A stretch of DNA of 64,000 bases, from positions 1,302,001-1,366,000 of the forward strand of contig OZ176058.1 of assembly GCA_964247055.1 (NCBI GenBank), read 5' to 3'. The position numbers and the translations under genes are program-made. The stretch is from Paragordius varius. Its lineage: Eukaryota > Animalia > Nematomorpha. Below, piece by piece: positions 2,876 to 63,470 of the stretch. The first letter of the stretch is position 1; each line of letters begins with the position of its first letter. Under the pieces are notes generated by a model, which saw only the letters and a program-made list of their open reading frames with translations, was not told the origin of the DNA and made no database searches.

Positions 2876-2949
<74 letters not shown>

Positions 2950-3085
2950 AAATTAACTTTTATCATAGGATTTCAATATAATATAAATTTTACGTAATTA
3001 TTATATATATATATATATAATTGAATTATAACTTTTATTTTTAAACGTATAATAAATATTAATTTTGAATTATAAGTAAATCTAA

Positions 3086-3143
<58 letters not shown>

Positions 3144-3190
3144 AAATTAATTTATCATAGGATTTCAATATAATATAAATTTGACGTAAT

Positions 3191-3224
<34 letters not shown>

Positions 3225-3577
3225 GAATTATAACTTTTATTTTTAAAAGTATAATAAATATTAATTTTGAATAATTATAGAATCTCAATATATATATATA
3301 TATATATATAATTATAACTTTTTATTCCAAAAATTATAAAAAATTTATAAAAAAATTTAAAAAAAAAATTTTCATTTCAAAAAAGTCATTTTGTAGAGCC
3401 ACAAAAATCTTAACATAAAATAATTTGACCAAAATTTAGAAATCAATTTTTTTTTGAAAAAATTAAATATAAAGATTACGTAATTTATATATATATATAT
3501 TATAACTTTTCATTAATATATATATAATATTATTAAATTCTTATAATTTTAAAATTTATAAATTTTTATAAAAAATT

Positions 3578-3686
3578 TTATTTCAAAAAAGTCATGAGGT
3601 ATCCAGGATTCTCAAGCAAATCCTTCCAGAACCGCAAAAATCTAGCAGCTGTTGCGCCATCTATAATTCTGTGATCAGCACTTAAA
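3578..3686 (-). pseudogene. Partial copy of the 3' half of DBT terminal exon B (LSADHR...TFLK*)
   Basis: 109 nt match 4166-4274 with 4 mismatches; there is no in-phase acceptor at its start. Confidence 0.9.
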
Positions 3687-4165
3687 TATAAATTCTTTAA
3701 ATATTGTATTAAATTCATTTTATATAATTTGTTTATATATAAATATATATATATATCAAAGATATAATAAATCAAATTTATTTTATAATCACAGTATCTC
3801 AATAATAAATATAATTTTTTATTCCAAAAAATATAATAAATATGGATAATTTCAAATTTATTTTATAATCATACTATCTCAATATGAATATATGTATATA
3901 TATTATATTATATATAAATTTCACGTAATTTAAAATATATATATATATATATATATATGCATATATATATAACTTTTTGCAAAGATATAATAAATATTAA
4001 TTTTGAATTATAATTATAGAATGATTTAGAAATATATAAATAACACATATATATAAATTTCACGTAATTTATTAAATATATATATATATATATATATATT
4101 TATAACTTTTTATTTATAAAATAACTTTTTTTCCAAAATAATAAATTTTTTTCAAAATTTATAAT

Positions 4166-4357
4166 TTATTTCAAAAAAGTCATAAGATATCCAGGGTTCT
4201 CAAGCAAATCCTTCCAGAACCGCAAAAATCTAGCAGCTGTTGCGCCATCTATAATTCTGTGATCAGCGCTTAAACTAACATACAACAGCGAGTGGCGAGA
4301 ATGTGAATTTAATCCACTGCAGATCACCTGATTTGCATTTTCATTTTTTTCAATGGT
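4166..4357 (-). CDS. DBT: DBT terminal exon, duplicate copy B ([11 protein letters not shown]...[15 protein letters not shown]...TFLK*)
   Basis: TAG acceptor at 4358-4359, 64 codons including TAA, catalytic DHR motif intact; paralogous to 18118-18303. Expression not demonstrated. Confidence 0.8.
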
Positions 4358-4368
4358 CTAAAATATTT

Positions 4369-4409
<41 letters not shown>

Positions 4410-4493
4410 TTTGAAAAACTTTGAAAATAAAATTCTAAATGGTAATTTTTAAAAAATAGCTGTTTTTGATTATCATTTTTTTCAATGGTCTAA

Positions 4494-4539
<46 letters not shown>

Positions 4540-5122
4540 TTAAAAAAAGCAATATTAATAAACGAAGAATACAGTAAAATTATATAATTAAACTTTGAAA
4601 ATAATCATCAATTATAATTGAAAAACTAGTAAAATATTATTTTAATTATATATATATATATATATATAAATAAATATATATATATATATATATATAATAT
4701 TTTCAAAAAAAGTATTATTAATAAAATAAGAATTCGTGATTTTGATTATCATTTTTTTCAAAGGTCTATTATATAATTAAAATTATATATAAAAATAGAT
4801 AAAATTTGTCAAAAAAAGGTATATTAATAAAATAAGAATTCGCTAAAATAAAAAAATCTAAAAAACTTTTAATAAAATGAAGATTAATTTAAATAGCTTT
4901 GATTTTCATTTTTTTCAATAGATAAATCATCCAAAATTATAAATTTATAATTTAAAAAATAATCATAATTTATTAAAGATTAGTAACATAAAATATATAT
5001 ATAGATATTTAAAAAAAACTTGTAAATAAGTATCTACAATTGGAAAACTAGTAAAATGGCAATTTATTAAATTAAATAGCTGATTTTGATTTTCATTTTT
5101 TTCAATGGTCTATAAAACATTT

Positions 5123-5169
<47 letters not shown>

Positions 5170-5376
5170 TTTGAATGTTCTAAATCATCTAAAATGATAA
5201 ATATTATTATATATATATATATATAAATATTTGAATGTTCTAAATCATCTAAAATGATAAATATTATTATATGTATATATATATCTTTTAAAAAAGTGTT
5301 TAAAAATCGAAAAACTAGTAAAGAGGTAATTTATTTAAATAGATGATTTTGATTTCCATTTTTTTCAATGTTCTAA

Positions 5377-5412
<36 letters not shown>

Positions 5413-5560
5413 TTTTAAAAAAGTATTATTAATATAAAAAGATGAATTTATTATATAAAATATATTAAAAAAATCTTAAAAATTAGTATCAAGTAATGAT
5501 TGAAAAACTAGTAAAATGGTATTTTAATTATCTTACAAAACTTAAAAACGAGTTTTTAAA
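4358..5560 (-). repeat. Acceptor-side echoes of DBT terminal exon B
   Basis: Repeated ...gattttcattttttcaatggtcta units (e.g. about 4450, 4740, 4895, 5080, 5345) equal the exon's first 30-40 nt plus its AG. Confidence 0.85.
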
Positions 5561-5599
5561 AAAATCTTCACTGATCATGAAACATGAAATTTAAAATAA

Positions 5600-7613
5600 A
5601 TAAAAAATTAAATTTCCAATATTTTTTAAAACTTGTAAAATATTGAAATATTTTATAAATAAAAATTCCAAAATAAATTTAAAAATAAATTCCAAAAATA
5701 AATTACCAATATTTTATATAATAAAAATTCCAAAAATAAAAACAAATTTCAAAAATAAATTACTAATAATATATTAAATAATAATAAATCTTGATAAAAT
5801 AAAAATTCCAAAAATTAAAAATTTACATCTTAAAATAAATTTTCCAAAAATAAATTACCAATATTTACAAAAACTTGTAAAATATTAAAATATTGATATT
5901 TTTAATTAAATAAAAAATAATTAAATTTATAAAATAAAAATTTTATTAAATAAAAATTCAGAAAATAATAAAATAAATTTTAAAAATAAATTACCAATAT
6001 TTTTTACAAAAACTTGTTAAATATTAAAATATTTTATTAAATAAAAAACTTTTTTAATCGCTATAAAACGAAAATTTTGAAAATTTTAATAAAAATAATA
6101 ATTAAAATAAAAACACCAAAAACTTGTAAAATATTAAAATATCTTATTAAAATATTTATATAAAATATTTTTTAAAAAACTTGTAAAATATTAAAATATA
6201 TTATAAAATAAAATTTCAAAAAATTATATTTAATATATATAAAATAAAACTCCAAAAATTAAAAATATTTTACAAAATAAAAATTTAAATTTCCAAAAAT
6301 TTAAATCAAAAATAAATTTCAAAAATAAAAATAAACTACCAATATTTTTCCAAAAACTTGTAAAATATTAAAAATATAAAATTGACATATCTTATAAATT
6401 TATAATAAAATTATAAAATATTTTATAAAATAAATTTAAATTAGATTTACAAAAACTTGTAAAATATTAAAAACTTAACAGTTTTAAAATATCTTATTAA
6501 ATATAAAATATATTAAAACATTTATAATTAAAAAATCTAAAATAAAATAAATTCCAAAAATAAATTACCAATATTTTTTACAAAAACTTGTAAAATATCA
6601 AAACATTTTATTAAATAAAAAATTAGTTAAAATATATTATAAAATAAATTCCAAAAATAAGTTAAAATTTTAATAAAAATAATAAGATTATCTGACAAAA
6701 ACTTGTAAAATAATTTACGATAAAAAATTATATTAAAAGATCTTATTAAATAAAAATAATATTAAAATATTTTATAAAATAAAAATTTAAAATAAAATAA
6801 TAAATTACCAATATTAATAGCTAACAAAACTTAAATTAAACTAGTTTAATTAGATACAAACTTTTTTTATTGCTATAAAACAAATATAAATATAAATTTT
6901 TAAAATATTTTATAAAATAAAAATTCCAAAAATTAAAAAAAACCAAAAAAATTATTTAAATATATTAAAATATTTTATAAAATAAAAATTCCGAAAATTT
7001 AAAATAAATTAAATTTTCCAAAAATAAATTACCATTATTTTTTACAAAAACTTGTAAAAACAATAAAATATATTATTAAAATATTTTATAAAATAAAATT
7101 TTAAATTAAAAATAAATTACCAATATTTTTCCAAAAATTTAAACAAAAAATTTTAATAAAAATAAAAATTGACATATCTTGTAAATATATGATAAAATAT
7201 TTCATAAAATAATCAAATTGACATCTTAAAAATTTTAGATAAAAAATTATATATAAATATATTAAAATAATTTATACAATTAAAATTCCATAATTTCCAA
7301 ATATAAATTACCAATATTTTTCCAATAGCTAAAAAAACTTAAATTTAAACATTTCTAAAAAACTTTTTTATTGCTATGAAACAAAAATTTTGAAAATTTA
7401 AAAATAATAATTTATTAAATAAAAATTCCAAAAATTAAAAAAAACCAAAAAAATTATTTAAATGTATTAAAATATTTTTTAAAATAAAAATTTCAAAAAT
7501 TTAAAATAAAAACAATATACTCTTAAAAATATAAGATAAAATATTTTATAAAATAAAAATTTAAAATATTTTATAAATTAAAAATTTAAATTAAATAAAT
7601 TTCCAAAAATTAC
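5600..7613 (-). repeat. Donor-side echoes of DBT 72-nt exon B
   Basis: About 10 copies of aataaattaccaatattttt(ccaatagcta), i.e. exon end GGAAAAATATTG plus GTAATTT donor (e.g. 5701, 5851, 5990, 6335, 6562, 6803, 7095, 7246). Confidence 0.85.
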
Positions 7614-7685
7614 CAATATTTTTCCAATAGCTATGATAGCTACCTCAGGCCATAATATTAATGGTTTCGCATGAATTCCTCCAAT
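7614..7685 (-). CDS. DBT: DBT penultimate exon, duplicate copy B ([24 protein letters not shown])
   Basis: AG/GT intact, 72 nt, phase 0-0; differs from 21240-21311 at 2 synonymous sites. Confidence 0.8.
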
Positions 7686-7739
7686 CTAAAACGCAAAAAA
7701 AAAAATTAAAAATAAATTTTTAAGAATAAAAATATTTAA

Positions 7740-9420
7740 ATTATACGGACAAAACGTAAAATATAAAGACAAATCGATTTTTTCTAAATAAAATAATATG
7801 AATATAAGTAATTTGCTTTCAAAATTGAAATAGAGTTACATATATTAGTAAAACAATCAATTCTATATAATTGTAACTAAAAAGTGTAAGAAAATATAAG
7901 TTAAAAAAAGTATGGTTAGGTTGTCTTTTAGGAAGAATAAAACTTTAAAAATATAAAAACAAAACGTAAAAATATAAAGACAAATCTATTTTTCTAAAAT
8001 CTTGATTTATTTCAATATAACTCTTTAAATGACAAGTGTGAAATATATATATATATTACTAACAATATCAATTTTAGAATTGTAATTAAACCTATAAAGA
8101 CAAATATTTTTTCTAAAACCAACCCCATACTTTTTAAATCATTTATTTCAATATAACTACTCATTGTCTGTAAATTTTCTAACAATTCTATTTACATAAA
8201 AAAGTTGAAATTATACGGACAAAACGTAAAAATATAAAGACAAATCTATTTTTTTTAAAACCAATCATATACTTTTTAAAACCTTATTTTTTCTCATATA
8301 AGCTATTTAGTTACAATTATAAAATATAGAATTGATTGTATTAGATATATATATATATATATATCTATTTACTTTGTTGTTTACAAAACAATCAAAGTGT
8401 TATATTTGAAAAAAAAATCAAGATTTAGTAAAAGTATGGTTGTTTTTTAGTAAAAAAAATATTTGTCTTTATATTTTTACGTTTTATCCTCACATATAAT
8501 TTAAGTTTTTACTGTTAAAATATAAAGACAATTGTATATTTTTTCAAAAAGACAACCATACTTTTTTGAATCTTGATATTTGTAATTTAAATATAATTCA
8601 TTGTTTTATATGGCAAAGTGTGAAATATATATATATATATATATATATTAAACAAAAATAATCAATTCTATATAAAATTGTAAAATTATTTATATAGCAT
8701 AAATTAAGGTTTTGAAAAATATGGTTGTCTTTTAAGAAAAACAAATATTTGTCTTTATAATTTTACGTTTTGTCCATAGTATAATTTCAAAAAAAATCAT
8801 TGTTTTATATGGACAAAGTGTGAAATAGATATATATATGTATATATATATTACTAATACAATCAATTCTATATTTTACAATTGTAACTAAATAGATCTTA
8901 TGAGAAAAATCAAGATTTAGTAAAAGTATGGTTGTTTTTTAGTAAAAAAAGTATTTGTCTTTATATTTTTACGTTTTGTCCTTAAGTAAAATTTTAATTT
9001 TTGTCTATTTACCTATATGGACAAAACGTAAAAATATAAAAACAACTAGTTTTTTCTAAATAAAATCTTGATTTTTTTTTCAATATAACTCATTGTTTTA
9101 AATGGCAAAGTTTGAAATAGATATATATATATATATATATATTACTAACACAATCAATTCTATATTTTACAATTGTAATTATATAGCTTATGAGAAATAT
9201 TGAATGGTTTAAAAAATATGGGGAATATTTGTCTTTATATTGATTTGTCCATAGTATATCAATATAACTCATTTTTTTAATTATGGACAAAACATAAATA
9301 TAAAGACAAATCTATTTTTTCTAAAAGACAAATAACTACCCAACCCTATTTTTTATATTTTGATTTTTTTAATTATATATATATATTATATATAATTCAT
9401 TGTTTTAAACTGTAAAGTAT
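7740..9420. mobile_element. Cluster of tandem and inverted fragments of MITE family A
   Basis: Repeated tatacggacaaaacgtaaaaatataaagacaaat and its reverse complement; homologous to 21360-24090. Confidence 0.75.
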
Positions 9421-9585
9421 AAAATAAGGTGTAAATTGTCAACACACTAAAATCTTATTTTAAATTTTATATATTTTTTTCCAATATAGTTTAAAAAATT
9501 AGTATTTTTATCCATTTTTAATTAATATTTATTAATTAAATAATTTACAAAACATTAAAAAAAATATTTTATTTAAAAATTAAAT

Positions 9586-9622
<37 letters not shown>

Positions 9623-9625
9623 TAC

Positions 9626-9829
9626 CGAACCAATGTTTGAAACAGTGAATGTCCCACCCGTTAAATCCGCCATCTTTGGCTTCCCAATCAGCCGGCTGTC
9701 ACGTGTTAGCCGTGCCAAGTCACGTGAAATTTGACCAATAGAAAGACGCTCAACTCCTTTAATATTTGGTACCACGAGGCCTAATTCCACATTTTGAGTC
9801 TCTATAGCCACGCCTATATTATGTTCTGA
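9626..9829 (-). CDS. DBT: DBT exon 9, duplicate copy B ([13 protein letters not shown]...[11 protein letters not shown])
   Basis: AG/GT intact, 204 nt, phase 0-0, conserved [10 protein letters not shown] motif; 17 nt differences from 24755-24958. Confidence 0.8.
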
Positions 9830-11251
9830 CTAAAAATTAATTAATAAAATAAAATTAAAAAAAAATATTTTTTTTAAATTAATATTTATAAATTAATTTA
9901 TTATTATTTTGTTATTTATTTTATTGTTTTTTTTTTCAAAAAAAAGTTTTAGTGAGTAAAAAAATAATTTATGCATTTATAAGAATTAAAATATCTTATT
10001 ATATATATATATATATATAGATACTAAAAAATAATTTATAAAATAAAATTAAATTTAAAAAAACATTTTTTTTAAATTAATTAATATAAATTAAAATAAA
10101 ACTTTTTTTTTAATAAATATAATAAAAAAAAAATATAAAAAAATTTATTTTATTATTATTTTATTGTTTTTTTTTTCAGAAAAAAATTATAGGTTTAAAA
10201 TTTATATAGAGACTAAACAATTTTATGCATGTTATTATAAGAAATAAAATATATCATTATTTATATATATACTAAAAAAAATATTTTTTAAATTAATTAA
10301 TATATAAATTTAAATAAAATTTTTTAAAATAAATTAATTTTTTAAAATAAAACTATTTAAAAATTAATTAATAATTTTATTGTTTTTTTTATCAAAATCT
10401 TTATATTGTTTTTTATTCAAAAAAAAATCAGGTTTTTGTATTAAGCAGTATTGAGTATTAAAATAGATAATTTTTTACATTTTTTATAAGAATTAAAATA
10501 TATCATTATATATAGATATATATACTAATTAAAAATTAATTTAAAAAATATATTATTTTAATTAATATATAAATTAAAATTGAAAAAAAAATTATTTGAA
10601 TAATTTTTTATCAAAATATTTATATTGTTAAATCTTTCAAAAAAAGTTTATAGGTTTTTGTATTATGCAGTAGTGAGTGTTAAAAATAATTTATATATTT
10701 TTTTATAAGATAAATTTATCATTTTAGAAATATATTATATATATATTAAAGCTAAAATTAAAATATTTTTTAATAAAAAATGATTACTTTTTGCTTAAAT
10801 TATTTTTTATTAATAATATTAATATCTACGGAAAAAATTAATAAAATATGTATTCAATTAAATTATACGTTATTTATGAAATAAAACTTTTTTGATATAT
10901 TTAAATATTTTTCATAATACATTGGAAATAAGATAACGTTAATTTTTTAAATATATATAATTAAAAAATTAATAATATATAATACTCATAAAAAAATTAG
11001 ATTTTTTTAAATTAATTAAATATATTTACATATATATAAAAATAAATAAATTAAAATTATAAAATATATATATATATATAAAAAATTAGATTTTTTAAAA
11101 ACCACATTTTTTATAAAAAATTAAATTAAAAATTCTTTCAAGAAAATTATAACCATTACGAAAATTAGTTAAATACCATATATTTAATATATATATATAT
11201 ATATATATTATTGGTGGAGTGAATAAAAAATTTATTTTTTTTTGCTAATAG

Positions 11252-11821
11252 GATTCAACTGAACTGGTCACACCTCTACCAACTTATACCCAAGCGACCA
11301 CCAACAATTCCTCCCAAAAAGATTTTATCGACAATAATTTACCATTTAATGAAGCAGTTAATAAAAATGAGGATTATTCAAAATCAAATAAAAATGCAAA
11401 AATGTCGACAAATTTAGCACTAAGTGCAAGATCTCACAAACCCGGATCATTACTAAATAGCAATGAAATCGCGAAAAGAAATTCTTTTAACGTTCCGCAA
11501 AATAATTTGGAAAACGAATTTGAAGATTTTGAATTAAATACTGTAATGGGCGATACTTTTAAGAGAAACGCTTCGAATTCCTTAAAAATCAATAAAAATC
11601 AAATTAAAAGCGAAAAAAATAGCAGTCGAAATGCAGATGATTTTGAAAATGGCGAAAATTTAAGCAATGAAAAAGATCAATCGTCTGATTATGATGACAC
11701 AGATGATGAAAATATGAATGAACCCAAAACAGATGATGGAACAAAAAATAAAGCATCTAAAAATGTTGAAATTAACCCAACTACAAATTCTCTCTTATTC
11801 AAGTGCTGTTCTATACAATGA
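11252..11821 (+). CDS. Orphan terminal coding exon of an unidentified gene; acidic low-complexity peptide ending ...LLFKCCSIQ*
   Basis: Poly-T acceptor tttattttttttgctaatag ends at 11251. A phase-0 frame is open for 190 codons (DSTELVTPLP...; the track lists only the part from ATG 11402). In-frame stops lie just upstream and no upstream exons are seen in the window. Confidence 0.7.
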   Translation, partial: DSTELVTPLPTYTQATTNNSSQKDFIDNNLPFNEAVNKNEDYSKSNKNAKMSTNLALSARSHKPGSLLNSNEIAKRNSFNVPQNNLENEFEDFELNTVMGDTFKRNASNSLKINKNQIKSEKNSSRNADDFENGENLSNEKDQSSDYDDTDDENMNEPKTDDGTKNKASKNVEINPTTNSLLFKCCSIQ

Positions 11822-12000
11822 ATTTTATAGATAAACATTTGAATTTGCCATTTTTTAACATTGTTTTTGACAAATCGCAAAACTTAGCATAATTTGAACG
11901 TAAAACCGTGCAAAAAAGGTGCCAGTGAGATGTTATCAAAAACTTTAAATCAAAATTATATATAATCTATAAATATATACATATATAATCCAAAATATTA

Positions 12001-12502
12001 CAGTATGAGTAAGTATACATTGCTAGTTTTTCATGAACTATTGTCAGATAACATATAAATCAAAAGGCAGTATACCATTTACAGTTCAAATTCACCTTTA
12101 AACAATTCAAATTTACCCTTGAACATTTCAATACCCTTGAGCAAGTCAAATTTTAAAAATAAATTATGTGATTGTTTTCGAGCTAGTATATCTTATTATC
12201 AATATGAAATATATCTTTATCGCATAGTTTATTATTTTTACAATATTATTTTAATTAAGAACACAATTTCTAATTTTTAAAATATACGTTGTTTTTAATT
12301 CGAAACATATGGTGAATTTAAAATGTTAGTTAATTTGAATAGTTCAAGGGTAAATTTTAATTGTTCAAGGGTGAATTTTAATTGTAAATGGTATATAATT
12401 GGTTGATAGTTATTGCTTTATTGTTTTTAACCAATTATAACTTTTAACTGCATATGATATCTGGCAATATTTAAAAATAGCAATACATATTTACTCATAC
12501 TG
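12001..12502. mobile_element. MITE family C (TIR CAGTATGAGTAA), TA-flanked, carrying a nested family B element
   Basis: ta|cagtatgagtaagtata ... tatttactcatactg|ta; a second copy without the insert lies at about 14092-14293. Confidence 0.75.
12073..12393. mobile_element. MITE family B (TIR TACCATTTACAGTTCAAATTCACCC), TA target duplication
   Basis: Long TIRs with subterminal aattcacccttgaac repeats. Other copies at about 20848-21108, 24137-24445, 28423-28762, 37934-38203, 41698-42001 and 53362-53722, with tandem fragments at 54570-55490. Confidence 0.85.
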
Positions 12503-12712
12503 TATATTCATATTTTATAATCCTACCCATCTCACTTTAATATCTACAAGTCATTTTTACCAATTTTTTTATACAAGTTTTTCTTATAAAATTATTTTAT
12601 AGATGTTTATATTTCATAAAGTTCTCATATATCATTCATTTATAGATATATTTTGCAGATTGAATATGCATTAAGCAATAAATTTTTATACGATATTTTT
12701 AGTGATACCTTA

Positions 12713-13978
12713 CAGTAAAAATTATTATACGGACAAAACGTGATTATATAACAAAAGTTTTTTTCAAAGACAACCATACTTTTTAAAACTCTAATTTCTC
12801 CTATTAAAAAGATTTAATAATAATTGTAAAATAGGTAATCGATTGTATTACCAATTAACATATCTATTCCAAACTTTGAAAACATTGTGTATATAAAAAT
12901 CAATTTTTAAAAAGTATGGGGTTGTCTTTTAGAAAAAAATAGTTGTCTTTATATTTTAACATTTTATCCGTATAATTTCAATTTTTACCGTAAATCTGCG
13001 AATATATATGATCCATTCCCTTAAAATAAAAGATGAGAGGCTTTTTAAATAGTTATTTAAACTTTAAGAAATAAAAATAATAATTTTTTTAAGACTAGCT
13101 CAGCTTTTGCTATTTTATGGAAACAATGTTTTGTGTTTAAGATTTGATAAAATATTTTTCAACAGTAAAAACTCAAAAAAGGGCAAATAAATTAATAAAT
13201 GGATACGTACTTTTATAATATTATCTAAAAAAAACCAAATTATTATTGATTTTCCAAAAAGCGAAATCTTAATTACATTTTTACATTATATTTCAACTTG
13301 ATGGATGATATAAATGTTAAATTAAATTTAAATATAGTAAAAATGCAAATTATACGGACACAGCGTAAAAGTATAAAGGCAAATATTTTTTTCTAAAAGA
13401 CTACCATACTTTTTAAAACTTTATTTTTTCTCCTAAAAACTATTTAACAAATTTAAAATATAAAATTGATTGTGTTAGTAGTATATAAATATATTTCACA
13501 CTCTGCCATTAAAACAATGAGTTATATTAATATAAATATATAAAGTATGGTCATTTAGGAAAAAAAATGTCATTATATTTTTACGTTTTGTCCTTATAAT
13601 TTCAATTTTTACTGTATATATACCAAAACAAAAAAATATATCCAATTAAATTCATAAAAATAATTCCTAAGTAAAAACTTTAACATAACAATATAGTAAA
13701 AACTGAAATTATACGGACAAAATGTAAAAACAAGGACAAATATTTTTATTTAAAAGATAACCATAATATTCCAAATCTTAATTTATATTAAAAATTAAAT
13801 TACAATCGTATAATTGATTGCTGGGTTATCAATTTACATCTTTATTTTTTAAATTTAGTTTAAAAAAAATGAGTTTCATTATAAAATCAAGAAAAAAGTA
13901 TTGGTTGTTTTTTACAAAAAAAATATTTGTCTTTATATTTTTACGTATTGTCCTAACGTATAATTTCAATTTTTACTG
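12713..13978. mobile_element. Three copies of MITE family A (about 280 bp; TIR CAGTAAAAAYTGAAATTATACGGACAAAACG; TA flanks; Tc1/mariner-like ends)
   Basis: Copies at 12713-12990, 13335-13614 and 13694-13978; further copies at about 45415-45709, 46023-46280, 59577-59857 and 60513-60775. Confidence 0.85.
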
Positions 13979-14380
13979 TATATTTATAATTTTTAAACCA
14001 ATTTTTGATTAAATAATCCTGTAATTATGGTTTATAATTTTAAAAAGTCAATAATACCTTCCTAATCGTAAAAATAAACTTATTATTTACACTATGAGTA
14101 AGTATACCTTGTACTAGAAAGTTATTAATTATTATTGCCAAATAGCATATATACAACAAAGGGGGCAGTATTATTGGCTTATAATTATTCTTTTCACATT
14201 TTAACATTATTGACCAATAATACTGCCCCCTTTGTTGTATTTACTATTTGGCAATAATCAAACTTTCCAACACAATGTATATTTACTCATACTCCTTACT
14301 TAGCTACAAAATTTCCTAAAATAAAATTATTTAACTAGAATTTCTAATAAAATAATTATACAACCATTTATTAATGAGAT

Positions 14381-14435
<55 letters not shown>

Positions 14436-14869
14436 GTCAACTTATGTAGTCTTTATAAATATACCGTTTTTTAATATACATTTATATATATATATAAAAA
14501 AATAAAACATTTTAATCTAAAAAGTATAATAAATATTAATAAATTTTCCTAAATTCTTGTAAAAATTAGAAAAAAATTATAACTTTCTATTTAAAAAAAA
14601 ATAAAAATATTGACAAATTCATATTTATTTTATAATAATAGAATCTCAATATGAAGAATATAAATTTTACCTAATTTATTATATATATATATATATATAT
14701 GACATTATAACTTTTTCCAATAATTTTGAATTATAATTATAGAATCATTTAGAAATATATTTATAATATATTATATATATATATATATAATTAAACTTTT
14801 TTATCCAAAATAATAAATTTTTATTTTTTTTATAAATATTTATATTTTCATAAATTTATTAAAAAAATT

Positions 14870-15093
14870 TCATTTCAAAAAAGTCATGAGGTATCCAGGG
14901 TTCTCAAGTAATTCCTTGAACCGTAAATAACTTAACAATTTAACTATAATTCCTAATAAAGAATTTTATTAAAACATAATTAACTCTACAAATATAATAT
15001 TGAATTCATTCTATTAAATAATATGTTTATTAATAATTTTTATTTAACAAAAATTAATAAATTTATTTTTATAATTATAGTATCTCAATATGA

Positions 15094-15124
<31 letters not shown>

Positions 15125-15426
15125 ACTTTTTCCAAAGATATAATATATATTAATTTTATTTAGTATATAATTATAGTATCTCAATATAAATAATATATAT
15201 AAAATTATAACTTTTTATTCCAAAAAATATAATAAATATATAAATTTTACGTAATTTTATATTTATTAATATATATATTTATAAATTTAGATTTTTTATT
15301 CCAAATAGTTTAATAAATATAGATAAATTCAAATTTAGAAAAAAAATTTAAAATCCTAAAAAACAATTTAACTATAATTTGTAATCAAATTTTTATTAAA
15401 ATATAACTAACTCTACCAAAAAGTGA

Positions 15427-15465
<39 letters not shown>

Positions 15466-17167
15466 GTTTTTATTCCAAAATTATAAATTTTTATTTTTTT
15501 TATAAATATTTATATTTTCATAAATTTATTAAAAAAAATTCATTTCAAAAAATCATGAGGTATCCAATTCAAATTTATTTCATAATCATAGTATCTCAAT
15601 ATGAAAATATAAATTTTAGGTAAATATATATATATTATATATAATTATTACTTTTTATTCCAAAAAGTATAATAAATATTTTCATAAATTCTTGTAAAAA
15701 TTTTATAAAAACATATTTCATTTCAAAAAAGTCATGATATATAAAATTATATCTTTTTATTTTTCCAAAAATATAATAAATTTATTTTTTTTAATTTTCA
15801 TAATTATAAAAAATTATAAAAATTATTTCAAAAAAGTCATAAGATATCCAGGGTTCTCAAGTATTCCTTCCAGAACCGCAAATGATTTAACAATTTAACT
15901 ATAATTCCTAATAAAAAATTTCATTTAAATATAAACTCTATAAATATTATATTAAATTCATTCTATTAAATAATGTGTTTATAAATAATTTTTATTTAAA
16001 AAAAAATTAATAAATATTAATTAATTATAATTTTTTACTCCAAATAGTTCAATATATTAATAAATTCAAAATTTATTTATATAATCATAGTATCTCATGA
16101 TAAAAAATATATAAATTTTAAGTAATTTATATATATATATAAATAAAATTATAAAAGATATAAATATTAATTTTGAATTATAATTATAGATTATACATTT
16201 CTATAAAAGAATAAATATGGATAAATTCAAATTTATTTATATAATCATATTATCTCAATAAATATTAATATTGAATCATAATTATAGTATTTCAATAATA
16301 TATATATATATATATATATATGATAAATATATATAACTTTTTATACCAAAAACATAATAAATATAATAAATTTTTATTTTTTTATAAATTTTTTCAATAT
16401 TAATAAATTTTTGTAAAAATTTATAAAAATTATTTCAAAAAAGTCTTGAGGTATCCAGGGTTCTCAATCAATTCCTTCCAGAACCGCAAATAACATAACA
16501 ATTCAACTATAATTCGTAATAAAAAATTTCATTTAAATATAAACTCTATAAATATTGTATTAAATTCATTCTATTATATAATATGTTTAAACTTTTTCCA
16601 AAGATATAATAAATATTAATTTTGAATAATTATAAAAAAATGTAAAATCCTAAAAAAACAATTTAACTATAATTTGTAATCAAATTTTTTTTAAATATAA
16701 CTAACTCTACCAAAAAGTGATTAAATAATAAATATACATATAATAAATATAATAAATTTTTATTTTTTTTCAAAATAATAAATTTTTATAATTTTCAAAA
16801 TTTATAAAAAATAATTTTATTTCAAAAAAGTCATAAGATATCCAGGGTTCTCAAGTAATTCCTTCCAGAACCGTAAAAATCCTAAAATAACAATTATTTA
16901 ACTAAAAATTATAACCAATTATCATGAAAATATAATCATAGAAAACATAATTTATTTATGAAATAATCATATAATCATATTTTATCGATATAATCCAAAT
17001 ATATATATATATATATATAATAAATTCAAATTTATTTTATAATCATAGTACCTCAACATATATATATATTTATAGATTGGAATATAACTTTCTAATTCTT
17101 TTATAAATATATATATATATATCAAAGATATAATAAATATTAATTTTAAATTATAATCATAGTATCT

Positions 17168-17206
<39 letters not shown>

Positions 17207-17341
17207 AATGACTTATGTAGTCTTTATAAATATACCATTTCATTTAGTATATAAATATATATACATATACATATATATATTTAATTATAACTTTTTTAAA
17301 GCTATAATAAATATTAATTTTGAATTATAATTATAGAATAT

Positions 17342-17375
<34 letters not shown>

Positions 17376-17665
17376 TAAATTTTCAAAATTTATAAATTTT
17401 TATATAATTTCAAAATTCTTAAAAAATTTTCAAAATTTATAAATTTATTTCAAAAAAGTCATAAGATATCCAATTCAAATTTATTTTATGAATATAGTAT
17501 CTCAATACGTAATTTATATATATATATAATAAATATATATATATATATAAAATTATAAATTTTCATAATTTCTTGTAAAATTTTTATAAAATAAAAAATT
17601 ATTTCAAAAAAGTCATAAGATATCCAGGGTTCTCAAGCAAATCCTTCCAGAACCGTAAAAATCTC
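14870..17665 (-). repeat. Array of stop-codon-end echoes of DBT terminal exon A
   Basis: ttatttcaaaaaagtcat(aagat/gaggt)atccagggttctcaag... fragments at about 14871, 15541, 15719, 15824, 16431, 16818, 17447 and 17600, separated by (TA)n-rich modules. Confidence 0.9.
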
Positions 17666-18117
17666 AACATAAAATAAGTTAACCAAAATTTATAACCATT
17701 TTTTTTTTGAAAAAATAAACACAGAAAACATAAATTATTTATGAAATAATCATATATTCATATTTTATCGATATAATCCAAATACATATATATATATATA
17801 TATATATACATATATATAAATGTCAACTTATGTAGTTTTCATAAATATACTGTTTCATTTAAGTTTACGTAATTTACTATATATATATATATATATATAT
17901 AACTTTTTATTCTAAAAAACATAATAAATATTAATTTGAATTATAATTATAGAACCTTAATATAAATAATATATATATATATATATATATATAACTTTTT
18001 ATTCCAAAAAACATGATAAATATAATAAATTTTCATATAATTCCCAAAAATATATTAAATATTTTTATAAATTTTTTCAAAATTTATAAATTTTTATGAT
18101 TTTTAAAATTTCAAAAT

Positions 18118-18303
18118 TTATTTCAAAAAAGTCAAAAGATATCCAGGGTTCTCAAGCAATTCCTTCCAGAACTGTAAAAATCTAGCAGCTGTTGCGCCAT
18201 CTATAATTCTGTGATCAGCGCTTAAACTAACATACAACAGCGAGTGGTGTGAATGGGAATTTAATCCACTGCAGATCATCTGATTTGCATTTTTTTCAAT
18301 GGT
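18118..18303 (-). CDS. DBT: DBT exon 11 (terminal), copy A
   Basis: tag|ACC ATT GAA ... TTG AAA TAA; TIEKNANQM...[10 protein letters not shown]...LLTFLK*. Confidence 0.93.
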
Positions 18304-18364
18304 CTAAATTTATATATATATATATATATATATATTTAAAAATTTTTAATATTACATAATATAC

Positions 18365-18395
<31 letters not shown>

Positions 18396-18526
18396 TTTTC
18401 AATGGTCTATAAAAGATTTAAAATATATAATTTTTTTAAAAAAAGGATTTTTAATATTACATAATATATATATATATATAATATATATTTTAATTTATCA
18501 TTTTTTTCAATGGTCTATAAAACATT

Positions 18527-18571
<45 letters not shown>

Positions 18572-18620
18572 ATATAATTTTTAAAAAATTATTATTAATT
18601 ATAGATAAATACAGTAATAT

Positions 18621-18658
<38 letters not shown>

Positions 18659-18708
18659 AAAATCTTTGAAAATAAGATTTATATAATAATTAAACTAGTA
18701 AAATGGTA

Positions 18709-18746
<38 letters not shown>

Positions 18747-19270
18747 TTTGTAAAAGCATTATTAATAAAAAAGAATTCGGCAACATAAAAATATATATAT
18801 ATTTCAAAATCTTTGAAAATAGATTTGCAATTTACATTAATTAAAATAGCTGATTTATCATTTTTTCGATATTCTAAAATATTTTAAAATTATATATATA
18901 TATATATTATATATAATTTTTTTAAAAATTATTAATAAAAGAAGTATCAATAATGATTATATTTATATATATATATTTATAAAAATAAAACCCAAATTGT
19001 ATCAATTGAAATACTAGTAAAATGGTAATTTATTTAAAAAATTAGCTGTTTTTGATTATCATTTTTTTCAATTGTCTAAAATTATATATATATATAAATA
19101 AAATTCAGACCATTGAAAAAAATGATCAAAAGCCATTTAAATTAATTTCCATTTTATTAGTTTTTCAATCATTTTTGTTTAAATCTTATTTTCAAAGTTT
19201 TTGAAAGATATATATATATAAAATTTGTTAAAAAAAGCATTATTAATAAAAAAAAGAAGAATTTGGCAAC

Positions 19271-19313
<43 letters not shown>

Positions 19314-19399
19314 TTAAAAAACTTTAAAAATAGGTTTGCAATTTACATTTATAATAATAGCTGATTTTGATTATCATTTTTGTCAATGTTCTAAATTAT

Positions 19400-19451
<52 letters not shown>

Positions 19452-19497
19452 TTTTTTTAAAAAAAAGCAATTATTAAAAAATGAATTCGGCAACATT

Positions 19498-19561
<64 letters not shown>

Positions 19562-19605
19562 TATATAATTTAAAAAAAGCATTATTAATAAAAATAAGAA
19601 TTCGG

Positions 19606-19649
<44 letters not shown>

Positions 19650-19806
19650 AGCATTGTTAATAAAAGAAAATTCAATTTAAATTTATATATTTATTAAAAT
19701 AAAAGATCCAAATAATATCAATTGAAATACTATTAAAATGGCAATTTATTATTTAAATAGCTGATTTTGATTTTCATTTTTTTCAGAGGTCTATTATAAA
19801 TTAATT

Positions 19807-19854
<48 letters not shown>

Positions 19855-20061
19855 TTTTTTTCAATGTTCTAAAACATTTAATTTCTAAAAAAAGTATTAT
19901 TAATAAAATAAGAATTCAGCAACATAAAAAATATATATATATTTTTTAAAAATGGAAATTAATTTAAATAGCTTTTGATTTTCATTTTTTTCATGTTCTA
20001 AAATTTAAAATTATATATATAAAATTTGTTAAAAAGAGTATTATTAATAAAAAGAATTCGG

Positions 20062-20097
<36 letters not shown>

Positions 20098-20601
20098 TCA
20101 AAAAACTTTGAAAATAAGTATCAAATATAATTGAAAAACTAATAAAATGGCAATTTATCTGAATAGCTGATTTTTGATTATCATTTTTTTCAAAGGTCTA
20201 TTATATATTAATTAAAATTATATATATATATATATATATATATTTTAAAATAAGCATTATTAATTAAAGATGAGTTGTAAAAAATAGGCATATATCTTTC
20301 AAAAAAATTTGAAAATAAGGTTTATATAATGTTTCAAGTAAATTGGCAATTTATTCTAAGATCAGCTGATTTTGATTATCATTATTTTCAATGGTCTATA
20401 AAACATTCAAAAAAATTGGTTTTCAACATTCTATAATAAAAATTTCCTATATATATATATATATATATATATTGTAAATTTTTTTGAAAAAAAGCATTAT
20501 TATTAAAAAAAGAAAAATTAAATAACATAAAAAATATAAATCTTTTGAAAAACTTTGAAAATTAGTATCAAGTAATGATTGAAAAACTAGTAAAATGGCA
20601 A

Positions 20602-20655
<54 letters not shown>

Positions 20656-23600
20656 TTTTAAAAAAAGTATTATTAATTAAAGATGATAGTTGTAAAAAAT
20701 AGGTATATATATTTCAAAAAAATAAAATAAGGTTAATGTTTCTAGTAAATTGGCAATTTATTCTAAGATCAGCTGATTTTGATTATCATTTTTTCAATAG
20801 TCTATAAAACATTTTAAATTATATAATATATATATATATATATATATATCATTTACAATTCAAATTCACCCTTGAACAATTCCAATTTACCCTAAAAATT
20901 ATTGAGTTTTCGGGCTGCTAATATAACTCATCATTAATTTAAAATAAATTTTTACGATATAGTTTATTATTTTTTATGCATTATATTGAAACAAAATTTC
21001 ATGTTTTAAAAGATTTTAAAATAAAGGTAATTTTAATTTTTAAAAAAAGATATTATTATTTTAGAGTGAATCTAAATTGTTCAAGGGTGAATTTGAACTG
21101 TAAATGGTGTATATATTATATATATATATATATATTTCAAATGAATTAGAAAATAAGAAATAAATATTATATAAAATAAATTTTTTTAAAATAAAATAAA
21201 TTTAAATAAAAAACTTAATATAAATTAAAAATAAATTACCAATATTTTTCCAATAGCTATGATAGCTACCTCAGGCCATAATATTAACGGTTTCGCATGA
21301 ATTCCACCAATCTAAAGGGCACAAAAAAAATCGAAAATATTTTTAAGAATAAAAATATTTAAATTATACGGACAAAACGTAAAAATATAAAGACAAATAT
21401 TTTTATGAATATAAGTAATTTGCTTTCGAAATTGAAATAGAGTTACATATATTAGTAAAACAATCAATTCTATATAATTGTAACTAAAAAGCTTATATAA
21501 GAAAATTAAAGTTTAAAAAAGTATGGTTAGTTTGTCTTTTAGAAAAAAAATATTTAAATTATACGGACAAAACGTAAAAATATAAACACAAATATTATTT
21601 TTTAAGACAAATTTATATTTTTGTAAATAAAATCCTGATTTATTTCAATATAACTCATTGTTTTAAATGGCAAAGTATGAAATATAAATGTAAAATTTTC
21701 AACAATACAATAATGATTTAAAATATAAAACTTGAAATTTAAGGACAAATCTATTTTTTCTAAATAAAATCTTTATTTTTCTGAAAATACAACCATACTT
21801 TTTGAATCTACGTTTATTTCAATATAACTATTCATTATATGTAAATTTTCAAACAATAATGATTTACAGTAAAAAAATATTTAAATTATACGGACACAAT
21901 GTAAAAATATAAAGACAAATATTTTTTTCTAATTAAAATCTTGATTTATTTCAATATAACTAACTCATTGTTTTAAATGACAAAGTGTGAAATAGATATA
22001 TATATATATAAGCTTATAAGAGAAATATTTACAGTAAAAATATAAAGACAAATCTATTTTTTTATAAATAAAATCTAGATTTATAACAATATAACTAAAT
22101 CATTGTTTTAAAATGTTAATTCATTTTAATTTAACTCATTATCTGTAAATTTTCAACAACAGAATAATAATTTAAATCTAAAATTGAAATTTTTCTTTGG
22201 ACAAAAGGAAAAATATAAAGACAAATATTTTTATTTAAAAGACAGCCCCATACTTTTTAAATCATTTATTTCAAGATAACTTACATTGTTTTAAATTGTA
22301 AAATATGAAATAGAAATGTAAAATTTTCAACAATACAATAATGATTTAAAATATAAAAGTTGAAATTTAAGGACAAAATGTAAAAATATAAAGACAATTT
22401 TTTTTTAAAAGACAACCATACTTTTTAAAATGTTTTAATGCATTTCAAGATAACTTACATTGTTTTAAATTGTAAAATATGAAATAGAAATGTATATTTT
22501 CAACAAAACAATAATGATTTAAAATAAAAAAGTTGATATTATACGGACAAAACGTAAAAATATAAAGACAAATATTATTTTTTAACTAAAAGACAACCAA
22601 CATACTTTTTAAAATGTGAATTTATTTCAAAACTCATTGTTTTAAATTTTCAACAACACAATAATGATTTAAAATATAAAAGTTGAAATTTAAGGATAAA
22701 ACGTAAAAATATAAAGACATATCCATATTTTTTCTAAAAAACAACCATACTTTTTAAATCATGAGATTTATTTCAATATAACTCATTGTTTTATATGGCA
22801 AAGTGTGAAATAGATATATATATATATATAATTAATACAATCAATTCCATATTTTATAATTGTACTAAATAGATTTTATAAGAAAAAATTTACAGTAAAA
22901 ATATAAAAATAAATGTATATTATTTCTAAATAAAATCTAGATTTATTTCAATATAACTCATTGTTTTATATGGTAAAGTGTGAATTAGAGATATATTTTA
23001 CTAACAATAATCAATTCTATATTTTATAATTGTGTAATTAAATTATTTATATAGCATAAATTAAGATTTTGAAAAGTATGGTTGTTTTTTAGTAAAAAAA
23101 TATTTGTCTTTATATTTTTACGTTTTGTCCTTAAGTATAATTTTACTGTATCTACTATAGACAAAACGTAAAAATATAAAGACAAATATTTTTTTCTAAA
23201 TAAAATCTTGATTTTTTTTTAAATATTAACTCATTGTTTTAAAATGTTGATTTATTTCAATATAACTCATTGTTTCAAATTTTCAACAACACAATTATTT
23301 ACAGAAGTTAAAATTTAAAATTATACGGACAAAACGTAAAAATATAAAGACAAATATTTTTTTTAAATAAAAGACAACCAACCCCATACTTTTAAAATTT
23401 TGATTTTTTTGAATATAACTCATTGTTAATTTTCAACAACACAATAATGATTTACAGTAAAAAGTTGAAATTATACGGACAAAACGTAAAAATATAAAAT
23501 CAAATTTTTTTTTTCGAAATAAAATCTTAATTTATTTCAATATAACTCATTGTTTAAAATGACAAAGTTTGAAATAGTATATAAATTAACACAATCAATT

Positions 23601-25144
23601 CTATATTTTACAATTGTAATTAAATAGCTTTTATAAGAAAATTTAAGTTAAAAAAAGTATGGTTAGGTTGTCTTTTAGAAAAAAAATATTTAAATTTTAC
23701 GGACAAAACGTAAAATATAAAGACAAATCTAGTTTTTTCTAAATAAAATCGAAATTTATTTCAATATAACTCATTGTTTCAAATGGCAAAGGGTGAAATA
23801 GATATATATATATATATATATATATATAACTAATACAATCAATTCTATATTTTAAAATTGTAAGTAAATAGCTTATATGAGAAAATATAAATTAAATTTA
23901 GAAAAAAAAATTGTCTTTATATTTTTACGTTTTGTCCGTATTATTTCAATTTTTTCTGTGTATTTACCTATTATGGACAAAACGTAAAATTATAAAGACA
24001 AATCTTTTTTTATAAAAGACAACCAACTCACCCATACTTTTTGAAACTTGATTTTTTTAATTATATATATAATTAATTATTTTAAACTGTAAAGTATAAA
24101 ATAGAGTGCATTTTAATGGTTGCTTATTTCAAATTATACCATTTACAATTCAAATTATACCATTTACTATTCAAATTATACCATTTACAGTTCAAATTCA
24201 CCCTCGAACAATTCAAATTCACCCTAAAAATAAATTATGTGTTCTAGGGCAGCTAATATAACTCATCATTAATATAAAATATATTTTTACGAGATAGTTT
24301 ATATTTATTCAGTATTATTATAATAATATAAAACAAAATTTCATTTTATGAAAAATATAAAAAATAAAGCTAATTTTTAATCTTAAAAAACACATAATTA
24401 ATAAATTAGGGTGAATTTGAATTGTTCAAGGGTATATAAATGGTATTTTTAATCAAGTTTAAAGACAATAAATTCGACTAATCAAAATAATTTATAATAT
24501 ATATATATATATAAAATATTTAAAAAATATAAAAAGCATATAAATCAAAATATTTTTAAAATAAAATTAAAGAACAAAAATTCTAAAACTTCCATATTTT
24601 ATATATATTGAATATTTTCCAAAATTCTAAAAAATTATCTCAAAAATAATTTAAGATCCTAAAAAATTAATTATTTATTTGATTATATATAATAATTATA
24701 TACTTTTTAAAATAATTAAGAAAAATTTAATTTTTTAAAAAATCAATTTTATACCGAACCAATGTTTGAAACGGTGAATGTCCCACCCATTAAATCCGCC
24801 ATCTTAGGTCTTCCAATCAGCCGGCTGTCACGTGTTAGCCGTGCCAAGTCACGTGAGATTTGACCAATAGAAAGGCGTTGAACGCCTTTAACATTTGGTA
24901 CCACGAGGCCTAATTCCACATTTTGAGTATCTATAGCTACTCCTATATTATGTTCAGGCTAAAAAAATAAAATAAAAAAAAATTAAAAAAATATTTTTTA
25001 AATTAATTTATTTGAATTAAACTTTTTTTTAATAAATATAATAAAATAAAAATATAAAAAAATTAATTTAATTTTTCGAAAAAAGGGATTTAAGCTTTTA
25101 TATGTTTATAGAGAATAAACATGCATTTGAACTATAATATATCA

Positions 25145-25195
<51 letters not shown>

Positions 25196-25610
25196 TTATA
25201 AAAAAATAAAATAAAATTAAATAAAAAATAATTTTTTTAAAATAAATTAATTTTTTAAAATAAAAATTTAAAAAAAATTAATTTGATTTAATTATTATTA
25301 TATCAAAATATTTTTTATTTTTCAAAAAAAAATTTATAAGTTTTATTTATGTAGTGAGTATTGAAAAAAAGCATTTTATGCATTTTTTATAAATTTTAAA
25401 ATATATCATTATATATATATATATACTAAAAAAAGTATAAAAAAAACTTTATTTAATTAATGTATAAATTTAAATAAAAATATAAAATTAATTTATTTAT
25501 TATTTTATTGTTTTTTATTTTCAAAAAAAAGTTATAGGTTTTTGTATTATGCAGTATTGAGTATTAAAATAAAAATTTTTTTACATTTTTTAATAAGGAT
25601 TATAATATAT

Positions 25611-25647
<37 letters not shown>

Positions 25648-26625
25648 GTTCAGGCTATAAAAATAAAATAAAATTAAAAAAAAATATTTTTTTAATTAAT
25701 TATATCTAAATTATAATAAAAATTTAAAAAATTTAATTTATTGAATAATTTTTTATAAATATAATAAAATAAAAATATAAAATTAATTTAATTTTTTAAA
25801 AAAATATATAGGTTTTCATATGTACGTAGTGAGTATTGAAAAAATAATTTTATGCATGTTCTTATAAGAAATAAAATATATCATTTTACAAATATATATA
25901 TATTAAAAAAATTATTAATATATATAAAAAATATTTTTTTAATAATTTAAATTAATATAAATTAAAATAAAACTTTTTAAAAAATCATATTTTTTTAATA
26001 ATTTAAATTAATATAAATTAAAATAAAACTTTTTAAAAAAATCAATTAATTAAATAATTTTTTATTAAAAACTTTATTGTTTTTTTTCTAAATAAAATTC
26101 ATGGGTTTACGTATGTATGTAGTGAGTATTTAAAAAATAATTTATGCATTATAAGAATTAAAAATTATTATATATTTTTAAAGCAAAATTATTAAATAAA
26201 AAATGTTTAATACTTCCAAGGAAAAAAATATAAAATGAAATAAATATGTTTTTAGTAAATATTAGTTATTTATGAATATAAAAGTTTTTTTTGATATATT
26301 TAAATATATAGTACTTTGAAAATAAGATAAATTAAATATTAAAAATCTTAATTATAAAATGTAAAATATAAATAAAAAAAGTATAATTATTAAATATATA
26401 ATAAAAAATTTCTAAAAAACAACCACATTTTTAATAAAGTAACAATTATATAAATAATTATATATATAAATAAAAAGATTAGAATTATTAAAAGTATATA
26501 ATAAATTAAAAAATTAGATTTTTTAAATAAACACATTTTTTATAAAATTAAATTAAAAATGTGGTTATTAAAAAATTATTATTTAAATAAATTATTTAAA
26601 TAAATTATTAAATACCATACATTCA

Positions 26626-26662
<37 letters not shown>

Positions 26663-28381: not shown

Positions 28382-28417
<36 letters not shown>

Positions 28418-30433: not shown

Positions 30434-30470
<37 letters not shown>

Positions 30471-63400: not shown

Positions 63401-63470
63401 ATCTCCGCCCCCTCTATTCTTTGATTTCCCATGTGACAGTTCGACGCGGACACGTACACCACAAACTTTT
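60430..63470 (-). CDS. SRSF3/SRSF7-like SR protein, 3' exons only: join(63105-63470, 60965-60982, 60430-60457); the RRM start lies beyond the window
   Basis: tag|A AAA GTT TGT GGT GTA CGT GTC CGC GTC GAA CTG TCA CAT GGG = KVCGVRVRVELSHG (RRM end typical of SRp20/9G8), then a G/Y/R-rich tract, an 18-nt micro-exon SYGRG, and RSRSYERRY*. All junctions are phase 2 and GT-AG. This frame is absent from the ORF track. Confidence 0.85.

Follow-up and report, generated by a model that had tools for sequence, protein, structure and literature searches.

Several genes are known to offer a choice between homologous protein parts that arose by tandem duplication. In Drosophila, pipe with its eight terminal-exon clusters and PGRP-LC with its 3' variable regions carry homologous, mutually exclusive terminal exons of this origin (PMC9013439), and internal mutually exclusive exons generated in the same way are found in Dscam, in Mhc, in ATE1 (exons 7a/7b) and in the SCN alpha genes (exons 5a/5b) (PMC9013439, PMC8373072, PMC9741552). 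Here we describe a stretch of 64,000 nucleotides of the nematomorph Paragordius varius (contig OZ176058.1, positions 1,302,001 to 1,366,000, hereafter the window) in which DBT, the gene for the E2 subunit of a branched-chain type 2-oxoacid dehydrogenase (the branched-chain keto-acid dehydrogenase), carries its last three exons twice, as two sets that we call cassettes A and B. We lean towards a lineage-specific duplication of the 3' end of DBT in which both copies appear to be under purifying selection and hence probably serve as alternatives to each other. As far as a limited literature search shows, alternative catalytic cassettes are not known for any E2 component of a 2-oxoacid dehydrogenase complex.

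The window is extremely AT-rich, with a GC content of 9-25 % in most 2-kb bins compared to 36-45 % in exons, and it is eukaryotic in character, its introns being long and rich in (TA)n tracts. The minus strand carries one gene for an E2 subunit of a 2-oxoacid dehydrogenase, which occupies more than 41 kb. A lipoyl domain (Biotin_lipoyl match at 40348-40638) and, by a weak match, an E3-binding domain (E3_binding, 39603-39809) are encoded upstream of the catalytic exons in the same gene. Exons 9A, 9B, 11A and 11B each score 46-60 bits against the Pfam catalytic domain PF00198, for which the gathering cut-off is 23.

For exon 9 and exon 11 of both copies, the top match among solved structures in PDB is bovine branched-chain E2b (2ihw/2ii3), not E2p or E2o. 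The motifs SADHRIIDG (exon 11) and FTVSNIGS (exon 9) are identical in A and B and align to the matching motifs of 2ihw; we take the catalytic residues to be the His of DHRxxDG and the Ser of TxSNxG. When 1.84 billion representative proteins were scanned by HMMER with exon 9A, the DBT of the horsehair worm Gordionus sp. m RMFG-2023 (P0001) was clearly the best match, at 61 % identity, and in a tree of 119 DBT proteins the window protein joins Gordionus with 100 % support, subject to the caveat of long branches. These matches identify the gene as a branched-chain type E2 (DBT/E2b) orthologous to annotated DBT.

The two homologous exon sets lie in tandem on one strand, can be reached from shared upstream exons and are compatible in frame (Table 1). 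AG precedes all six exons and GT follows all four internal ones; each B exon is preceded by ...ttag, and gtaa follows 9B and 10B. Exon lengths in A and B are 204/204, 72/72 and 186/192 nt. All exons are phase 0 and exon 8 closes on a complete codon at 26856, so that every mixture of A and B exons stays in frame, and because the peptides of 10A and 10B are identical these mixtures would amount to three distinct proteins. In both 11A and 11B, AATAAA overlaps the stop codon.

Between the cassettes 27 of 459 nt differ, which corresponds to 13 silent codons, 11 replacement codons (P/S, D/E, V/I, Q/E, R/K, M/T, M/V, H/R, Q/R, E/D and L/M) and one 6-nt in-frame indel in exon 11. At the protein level the difference is thus 11 mostly conservative residues plus two inserted residues, a similarity that far exceeds chance. 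The introns are heavily remodelled, intron 9 measuring 3443 nt in A and 1940 nt in B with gap-rich BLAST blocks that are 73-88 % identical. Most of this had been claimed in an original prediction made from the sequence alone, and the claims held when we went back to the translations and flanks: the positions it gave are exact, with the exons of B at 9626-9829, 7614-7685 and 4166-4357, all AG/GT sites are kept, B contains neither stop nor frameshift and retains the DHR motif, a recount of codons returned identical numbers and pairs with the same single indel, and the remodelled introns, common phase and three possible proteins are as described.

The prediction had also proposed dN/dS between the copies as a check. 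The Nei-Gojobori method gives a nonsynonymous divergence (dN) of 0.032 and a synonymous divergence (dS) of 0.166, a ratio of 0.19, and a pairwise maximum likelihood (ML) codon model estimates omega at 0.20 (approximate 95 % interval 0.09-0.44). With constraint on one copy alone and the other evolving freely, a pairwise omega of about 0.5-0.55 would be expected. The ML model rejects values of 0.5 (p=0.023), 0.55 (p=0.012) and 1.0 (p=1e-4), and a substitution spectrum derived from the flanks agrees (P 0.009-0.017).

A stronger signal comes from indels. Flank positions of normal complexity show 0.067 gap events per nt. At this rate the 465 nt of B exons should have accumulated about 16 indel events if B alone were free, compared to the one in-frame event observed (P ~2e-6, with the expectation matched for local sequence complexity). 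This P is not to be read literally, since gap counts are inflated in AT-rich alignments. Gene conversion confined to the exons does not explain the conservation, because the synonymous sites of the exons (pS 0.149) have diverged no less than the flanks; this is clearest in exon 9, the most diverged exon (dS 0.25) and the one with the lowest omega (0.16). Partial copies of the 3' part of exon 7 provide an internal neutral control, with replacement to silent changes of, for example, 15:5, 14:8 and 25:3, plus frameshifts and stops. The marks of a pseudo-exon, namely stops, frameshifts, lost splice sites and an omega near 1, are absent from B. Taken together, these tests show statistically, on a small sample, that both cassettes behave as protein-coding sequence under purifying selection.

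Table 1. Features of the DBT locus in the window (a slash marks an exon boundary)
Feature	Positions	Strand	Basis
Lipoyl-domain exon	~40444-40626	-	Pfam PF00364
E3-binding exon	~39618-39790	-	weak Pfam PF02817 match
Exon 8, last exon common to both cassettes, phase 0 end (…GAATATATG/gtattt)	26856-26933	-	tblastn with Gordionus DBT, sequence
Exon 9A, 68 codons, catalytic-Ser motif FTVSNIG	24755-24958	-	Pfam, translation
Exon 10A, 24 codons	21240-21311	-	translation, flanks
Exon 11A, 61 codons + stop, 186 nt	18118-18303	-	Pfam, translation
Six partial copies of the exon 11 end (last 28-66 nt, with the stop), after 11A	14872-17664	-	alignment
Inter-unit spacer, 3.15 kb, without counterpart downstream of B inside the window; MITE-like dispersed repeats	11212-14365		BLAST
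Start of unit B: relic of last 12 nt of exon 8 + donor GT (ATTAAATATATG/GTATTTAAC)	11168-11188	-	true copy at 26867-26847
Intron 8 copy preceding exon 9B	9830-11167	-	BLAST alignment to unit A
Exon 9B, 204 nt	9626-9829	-	translation, Pfam, flanks
Exon 10B, 72 nt, peptide identical to 10A, 2 silent differences	7614-7685	-	translation, flanks
Exon 11B, 63 codons + TAA, 192 nt	4166-4357	-	translation, Pfam, 2ihw match
109-nt partial copy of exon 11 3' part, after 11B, open to …TFLK and stop	3578-3686	-	alignment
(TA)32 tract, downstream limit of detectable A/B homology	2882-2945		unit A counterpart (TA)24 at 14385-14432

The extent of the duplication can be followed well beyond the exons. A chain of collinear BLAST blocks pairs positions 2876-11211 (unit B) with 14366-26651 (unit A), and we took the divergence of the units from these blocks; a global alignment of 300-nt flanks was dropped as a measure because unrelated AT-rich segments align in this way at about 26 % mismatches. 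Of the non-coding aligned bases 10.9 % differ (417/3843), and the 305 gap events correspond to 0.079 per nt. Unit B opens with a relic of exon 8 that directly follows a (TA)10 tract (11188-11207), and the alignment runs on from it into intron 8. The unit that was duplicated therefore began at the extreme end of exon 8 and extended well beyond exon 11. At each of its four ends the A/B alignment adjoins a (TA)n tract, which suggests unequal exchange mediated by such tracts as a reasonable origin; as markers of the breakpoints they are only suggestive, because these tracts recur about every 400 nt here.

The site where a counterpart of the inter-unit spacer would be expected after B is occupied by a Ty3/gypsy-type element. 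This long terminal repeat retroelement is seen as an open pol reading frame of 826 codons on the plus strand (1-2478), which continues beyond the left edge of the window. It is located some 1.7 kb past exon 11B and encodes RVT_1, RNase H and integrase zinc finger and core domains.

Divergence between A and B is not uniform. Exon 10 and the 300 nt upstream of it differ by merely ~3-7 %, far below the rest, which indicates probable gene conversion in this tract. In both cassettes, the well-conserved intron block immediately before exon 10 represents one copy of a short dispersed repeat resembling a miniature inverted-repeat transposable element (MITE), and Rfam and tRNA scans of the whole window returned nothing that accounts for this block. 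The MITE-like repeat occurs in both orientations in many introns, with ends such as GGACAAAACGTAAAAATATAAAGACAAATA and its reverse complement, at 8190-9221, 12700-14000, 21874-24056, 45400-46232 and 59573-60593 (both strands).

In principle, a heterozygous individual could have contributed A and B as its two haplotypes, misassembled in tandem. Two functional alleles would likewise show low dN/dS, intact splice sites and indel-rich introns, and with the retroelement interrupting the sequence expected after B, structure alone leaves room for an overlap mis-join. However, the divergence is well beyond allelic levels (5.9 % in exons, dS 0.17, at least 11 % in non-coding sequence, ~8 indel events per 100 nt and introns that are 1.5 kb apart in length), B begins at a (TA)n tract with a 12-nt exon-8 relic instead of continued upstream homology, and the locus holds many unquestionable tandem duplications of all ages. 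Heterozygosity is 0.548 % in the one nematomorph species with a published estimate (10.1101/2023.06.26.546503). Because the A/B difference is about 20 times this value, we consider the haplotype explanation very improbable, and on the evidence of divergence and breakpoints A and B are a real and fairly old tandem duplication.

In the Gordionus locus (L001, 33 kb), DBT consists of 11 coding exons and matches the window gene in its intron positions at exons 9, 10 and 11, and the two genes share a four-residue insertion in exon 9. No second copy of exons 9-11 was found in this locus of the one relative compared, the nearest found, nor anything DBT-like in the 10 kb downstream. Because Gordionus has a single cassette, the duplication is specific to the lineage of the window, and A and B are mutual closest relatives with 96 % identity over their shared alignment. 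Exon 11 of Gordionus (L001 22872-23267) encodes about 95 extra residues between the AIGKI strand and SADHR when compared to the window protein and other animals. In RefSeq the Gordionus gene has two isoforms, of 520 and 524 aa, which arise from an alternative donor in exon 3.

Among the 119 orthologues, the commoner residue is that of A at D10, Q27 and L149 and that of B at S1, I23, K50, T57 and V101. A Tajima-type count with Gordionus as outgroup places 3 changes on A and 2 on B, and neither copy is clearly the degenerate one. The roles of the two may even be swapped, with B now the constitutive end and A skipped or on its way out. B has the commonest orthologue residue at 5 of the 11 differing sites, including the T in DLTGGTFT beside the catalytic Ser, where A has an unusual Met; the exon-11 tail fragments described below share R and M with 11B, which makes Q and L derived in 11A; and the donor of 9B (gtaata) is nearer to the usual donors of the gene (gtaaat/gtaatt) than that of 9A (gtataa). 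Nevertheless A is proximal, has intact sites and keeps an invariant Asp that is lost in B, and the pairwise omega argues that neither copy has long been free. We regard a swap of roles as improbable.

A number of observations weigh against the use of B. The gene is littered with dozens of partial tandem copies of exon edges, in most of its introns. The 5' part of the lipoyl exon together with its AG has four extra copies upstream (41586-41530, 41307-41251, 41041-40979 and 42803-42775, minus strand), which are 90-98 % identical to the real exon and preceded by cag/tag. Exon 7, at ~30990-31298 on the minus strand, is represented in intron 6 (31509-37407) by about 25 copies of its first 35-48 nt with the acceptor AG, and in intron 7 (27249-30898) by about 12 decayed copies of its 3' part. 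From 32050 to 36001, intron 6 shows a perfect 1354-bp periodicity that points to either a very recent tandem duplication or an assembly effect.

Several copies of the acceptor and first 30-58 nt of exon 11 lie in intron 10B (4438-5370) as well as in intron 10A (18487-20801), on the minus strand, and for this reason predate the A/B duplication. The end of exon 10 with its donor (…GGAAAAATATTG/GTAATTT) recurs in intron 10B, for example at 7312-7331, and an extra copy of the end of exon 8 with its donor is found at 26608-26620, about 230 nt into intron 8A, within a 132-nt tandem repeat (26581-26852). The copies of the exon 11 tail after 11A are located at 17664-17599, 17472-17445, 16881-16817, 16490-16430, 15882-15823 and 14932-14872, and the older ones are frameshifted.

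The 109-nt tail copy after 11B shows 4 silent and no replacement differences from 11B; two of the four also occur in other tail fragments, so these changes are not all independent events. Just upstream is a possible in-frame AG (…tttaaag/AAT TTA TAT TTA AGT GCT…), and the fragment may be a third, shortened terminal exon or a coincidence. Cassette B is the largest and the sole complete product of a very active local duplication process.

Such active partial duplication raises the prior for B as a by-product. The main rival reading is that B (or, less likely, A) is a silent outcome of rampant local duplication, never spliced, and either too young to have decayed or occasionally refreshed by conversion. 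The many exon-edge copies are plainly non-functional, the 1354-bp unit of intron 6 repeats perfectly, and conversion around exon 10 could have refreshed part of B. Moreover, B has Glu at a nearly invariant site where 116 of the 119 orthologues and copy A have Asp, its tip in the ML tree is longer (0.067 vs 0.013 for A), it lies beyond a complete terminal exon 11A with a stop and poly(A) signal, and Gordionus lacks the duplication. The omega test rests on 27 substitutions, and with about this number an escape by chance from a new stop codon or a hit on a splice site is not very improbable (~0.1-0.4 by our estimate). The exon-11 tail fragments, which are unable to code alone, also have rather few replacement differences. 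Finally, no protein or transcript of the species of the window was present among the homologues retrieved with Gordionus DBT, exon 9B and the C-terminal 222 aa of Gordionus as queries (lengths 37-910 aa). The partial exon copies, the exon-11 tails after both cassettes, the homogenised region of exon 10 and the single cassette in Gordionus are context that the original prediction did not have, and they temper its claim.

A silent by-product is nevertheless hard to reconcile with an omega of 0.20 and the rejection of 0.5-0.55 at p 0.01-0.02, or with one in-frame indel where some 16 would be expected. Exon 9 combines the highest synonymous divergence with the lowest omega, which argues against recent conversion, and the replacements are evenly spread over A and B when compared to the outgroup and the orthologue consensus. 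The aged by-products at this locus look decayed, and B looks unlike them. We therefore view a silent B as a serious but doubtful alternative.

Under the reading that we prefer, both cassettes are used. The segment of the single DBT gene that was duplicated in tandem, after the split from Gordionus, starts at the last few bases of exon 8, takes in intron 8 and exons 9-11 and reaches into the 3' flank. The likely mechanism would be unequal recombination or slippage in a locus dense in (TA)n tracts and short dispersed repeats. Purifying selection has since preserved both three-exon cassettes, and the simplest route by which selection could act on B is that some transcripts include the B exons. 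Such transcripts would read past the poly(A)/cleavage site of 11A; exon 8 would join 9B across a 17-kb intron, or 9A or 10A would join later B exons, with 11B as the last exon of the mRNA. Individual mixed joins (9A-10A-11B and the like) are arithmetic possibilities only. A search for docking/selector duplexes between the shared intron and each copy returned only pairings of (TA)n or A/T runs, with a best energy within the range of shuffles for A and, for B, -34 kcal/mol compared to -27±1.8 kcal/mol in shuffles, at a low-complexity end.

Depending on the cassette, an mRNA would encode one or the other version of the C-terminal half of the catalytic domain. Because the differences are mostly conservative and the catalytic Ser and His are kept, both halves would be expected to give active subunits able to co-assemble. 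The C-terminal half of E2 contains the His of an active site shared between subunits and a C-terminal segment that takes part in trimer-trimer contacts, and the L/M difference falls within this segment. The original prediction is supported in part: it is right about the structure, and the sequence evidence favours function. Its further step, to a choice of last exon that would give mixed-subunit 24-mer cores, is plausible but speculative. Going further still, we tentatively hypothesize an E2b scaffold with two selectable C-terminal halves derived from a recent three-exon duplication, in which coupled splice and poly(A) choice would set homo- and hetero-oligomeric 24-mers and the exon-edge arrays would represent the raw process of cassette birth. 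We hold this larger picture to be possible rather than probable.

In a tblastx comparison of the window with the Gordionus locus, DBT exons alone match and no common neighbours are found. The inter-cassette spacer contains a 189-codon open reading frame on the plus strand (11252-11818), rich in Asn, Ser, Lys and Glu, with a GC content of 31 % compared to ~16 % around it. It has no match in Pfam or in the Gordionus locus and may represent either a relic or an exon belonging to a neighbouring, convergent gene. A GC-rich (52 %) reading frame at 63104-63511 (minus strand) encodes a low-complexity peptide rich in Gly, Arg, Tyr and Ser (…GGGDRDNNSGRRGGYRGSAGGGGGYRG…) with no Pfam match; possibly this is an exon from a gene for an RNA-binding protein of the RGG or SR-like type.

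If B is used, the locus would be a young, lineage-specific case of tandem duplication making alternative protein ends. It would have been caught at ~6 % exon divergence with its breakpoints (the exon-8 relic and the (TA)n tracts) still readable, and the affected part of the enzyme would be the one that forms the subunit-shared active site and the contacts of the 24-mer core. If B is unused, the locus clearly illustrates how far signatures resembling purifying selection can last in a silent duplicate. Annotation is affected as well, since a gene predictor may terminate DBT at 11A, merge the two cassettes or report B as a fragment gene.

The gene as such resembles single-cassette DBT/E2b (Gordionus XP_065316426/8; bovine 2ihw/2ii3) in the order of lipoyl, E3-binding and catalytic domains and in the catalytic Ser and His motifs. 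Unlike the Gordionus DBT, a 13-kb gene with one copy of exons 9-11, it extends over more than 41 kb, has two copies and carries arrays of partial exons in most introns. With unprocessed duplicated pseudo-exons it shares an extra exon copy past the stop of a complete gene and a duplication-prone locus, but B has no stop, frameshift or lost splice site and an omega of 0.2, and the exon-7 pseudo-copies behave differently.

Dscam, Mhc, ATE1 and SCN resemble the DBT cassettes in their origin by tandem exon duplication, equal length and phase, mostly conservative changes and purifying selection on both copies. In those genes, however, single internal exons are exchanged between shared exons, whereas in DBT the whole 3' end is duplicated, so that a choice of cassette must be coupled to a choice of poly(A) site. 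Most known cases of the Dscam/Mhc type are also ancient and conserved across phyla, whereas the DBT cassette is lineage-specific and absent in Gordionus. The closest parallels are pipe and PGRP-LC, where, as here, tandem copies of the 3' end of the gene follow one another in one orientation, every copy has its own stop, poly(A) signal and homologous C-terminal domain, and the common upstream part could join either copy. DBT differs from them in having just two copies of three exons each, whose use we infer from sequence, and in being a core mitochondrial metabolic enzyme, whereas pipe and PGRP-LC act in patterning and immunity. Alternative terminal cassettes generated by tandem duplication thus have precedents; if the use of both cassettes is true, it is the gene in which they occur that is unexpected.

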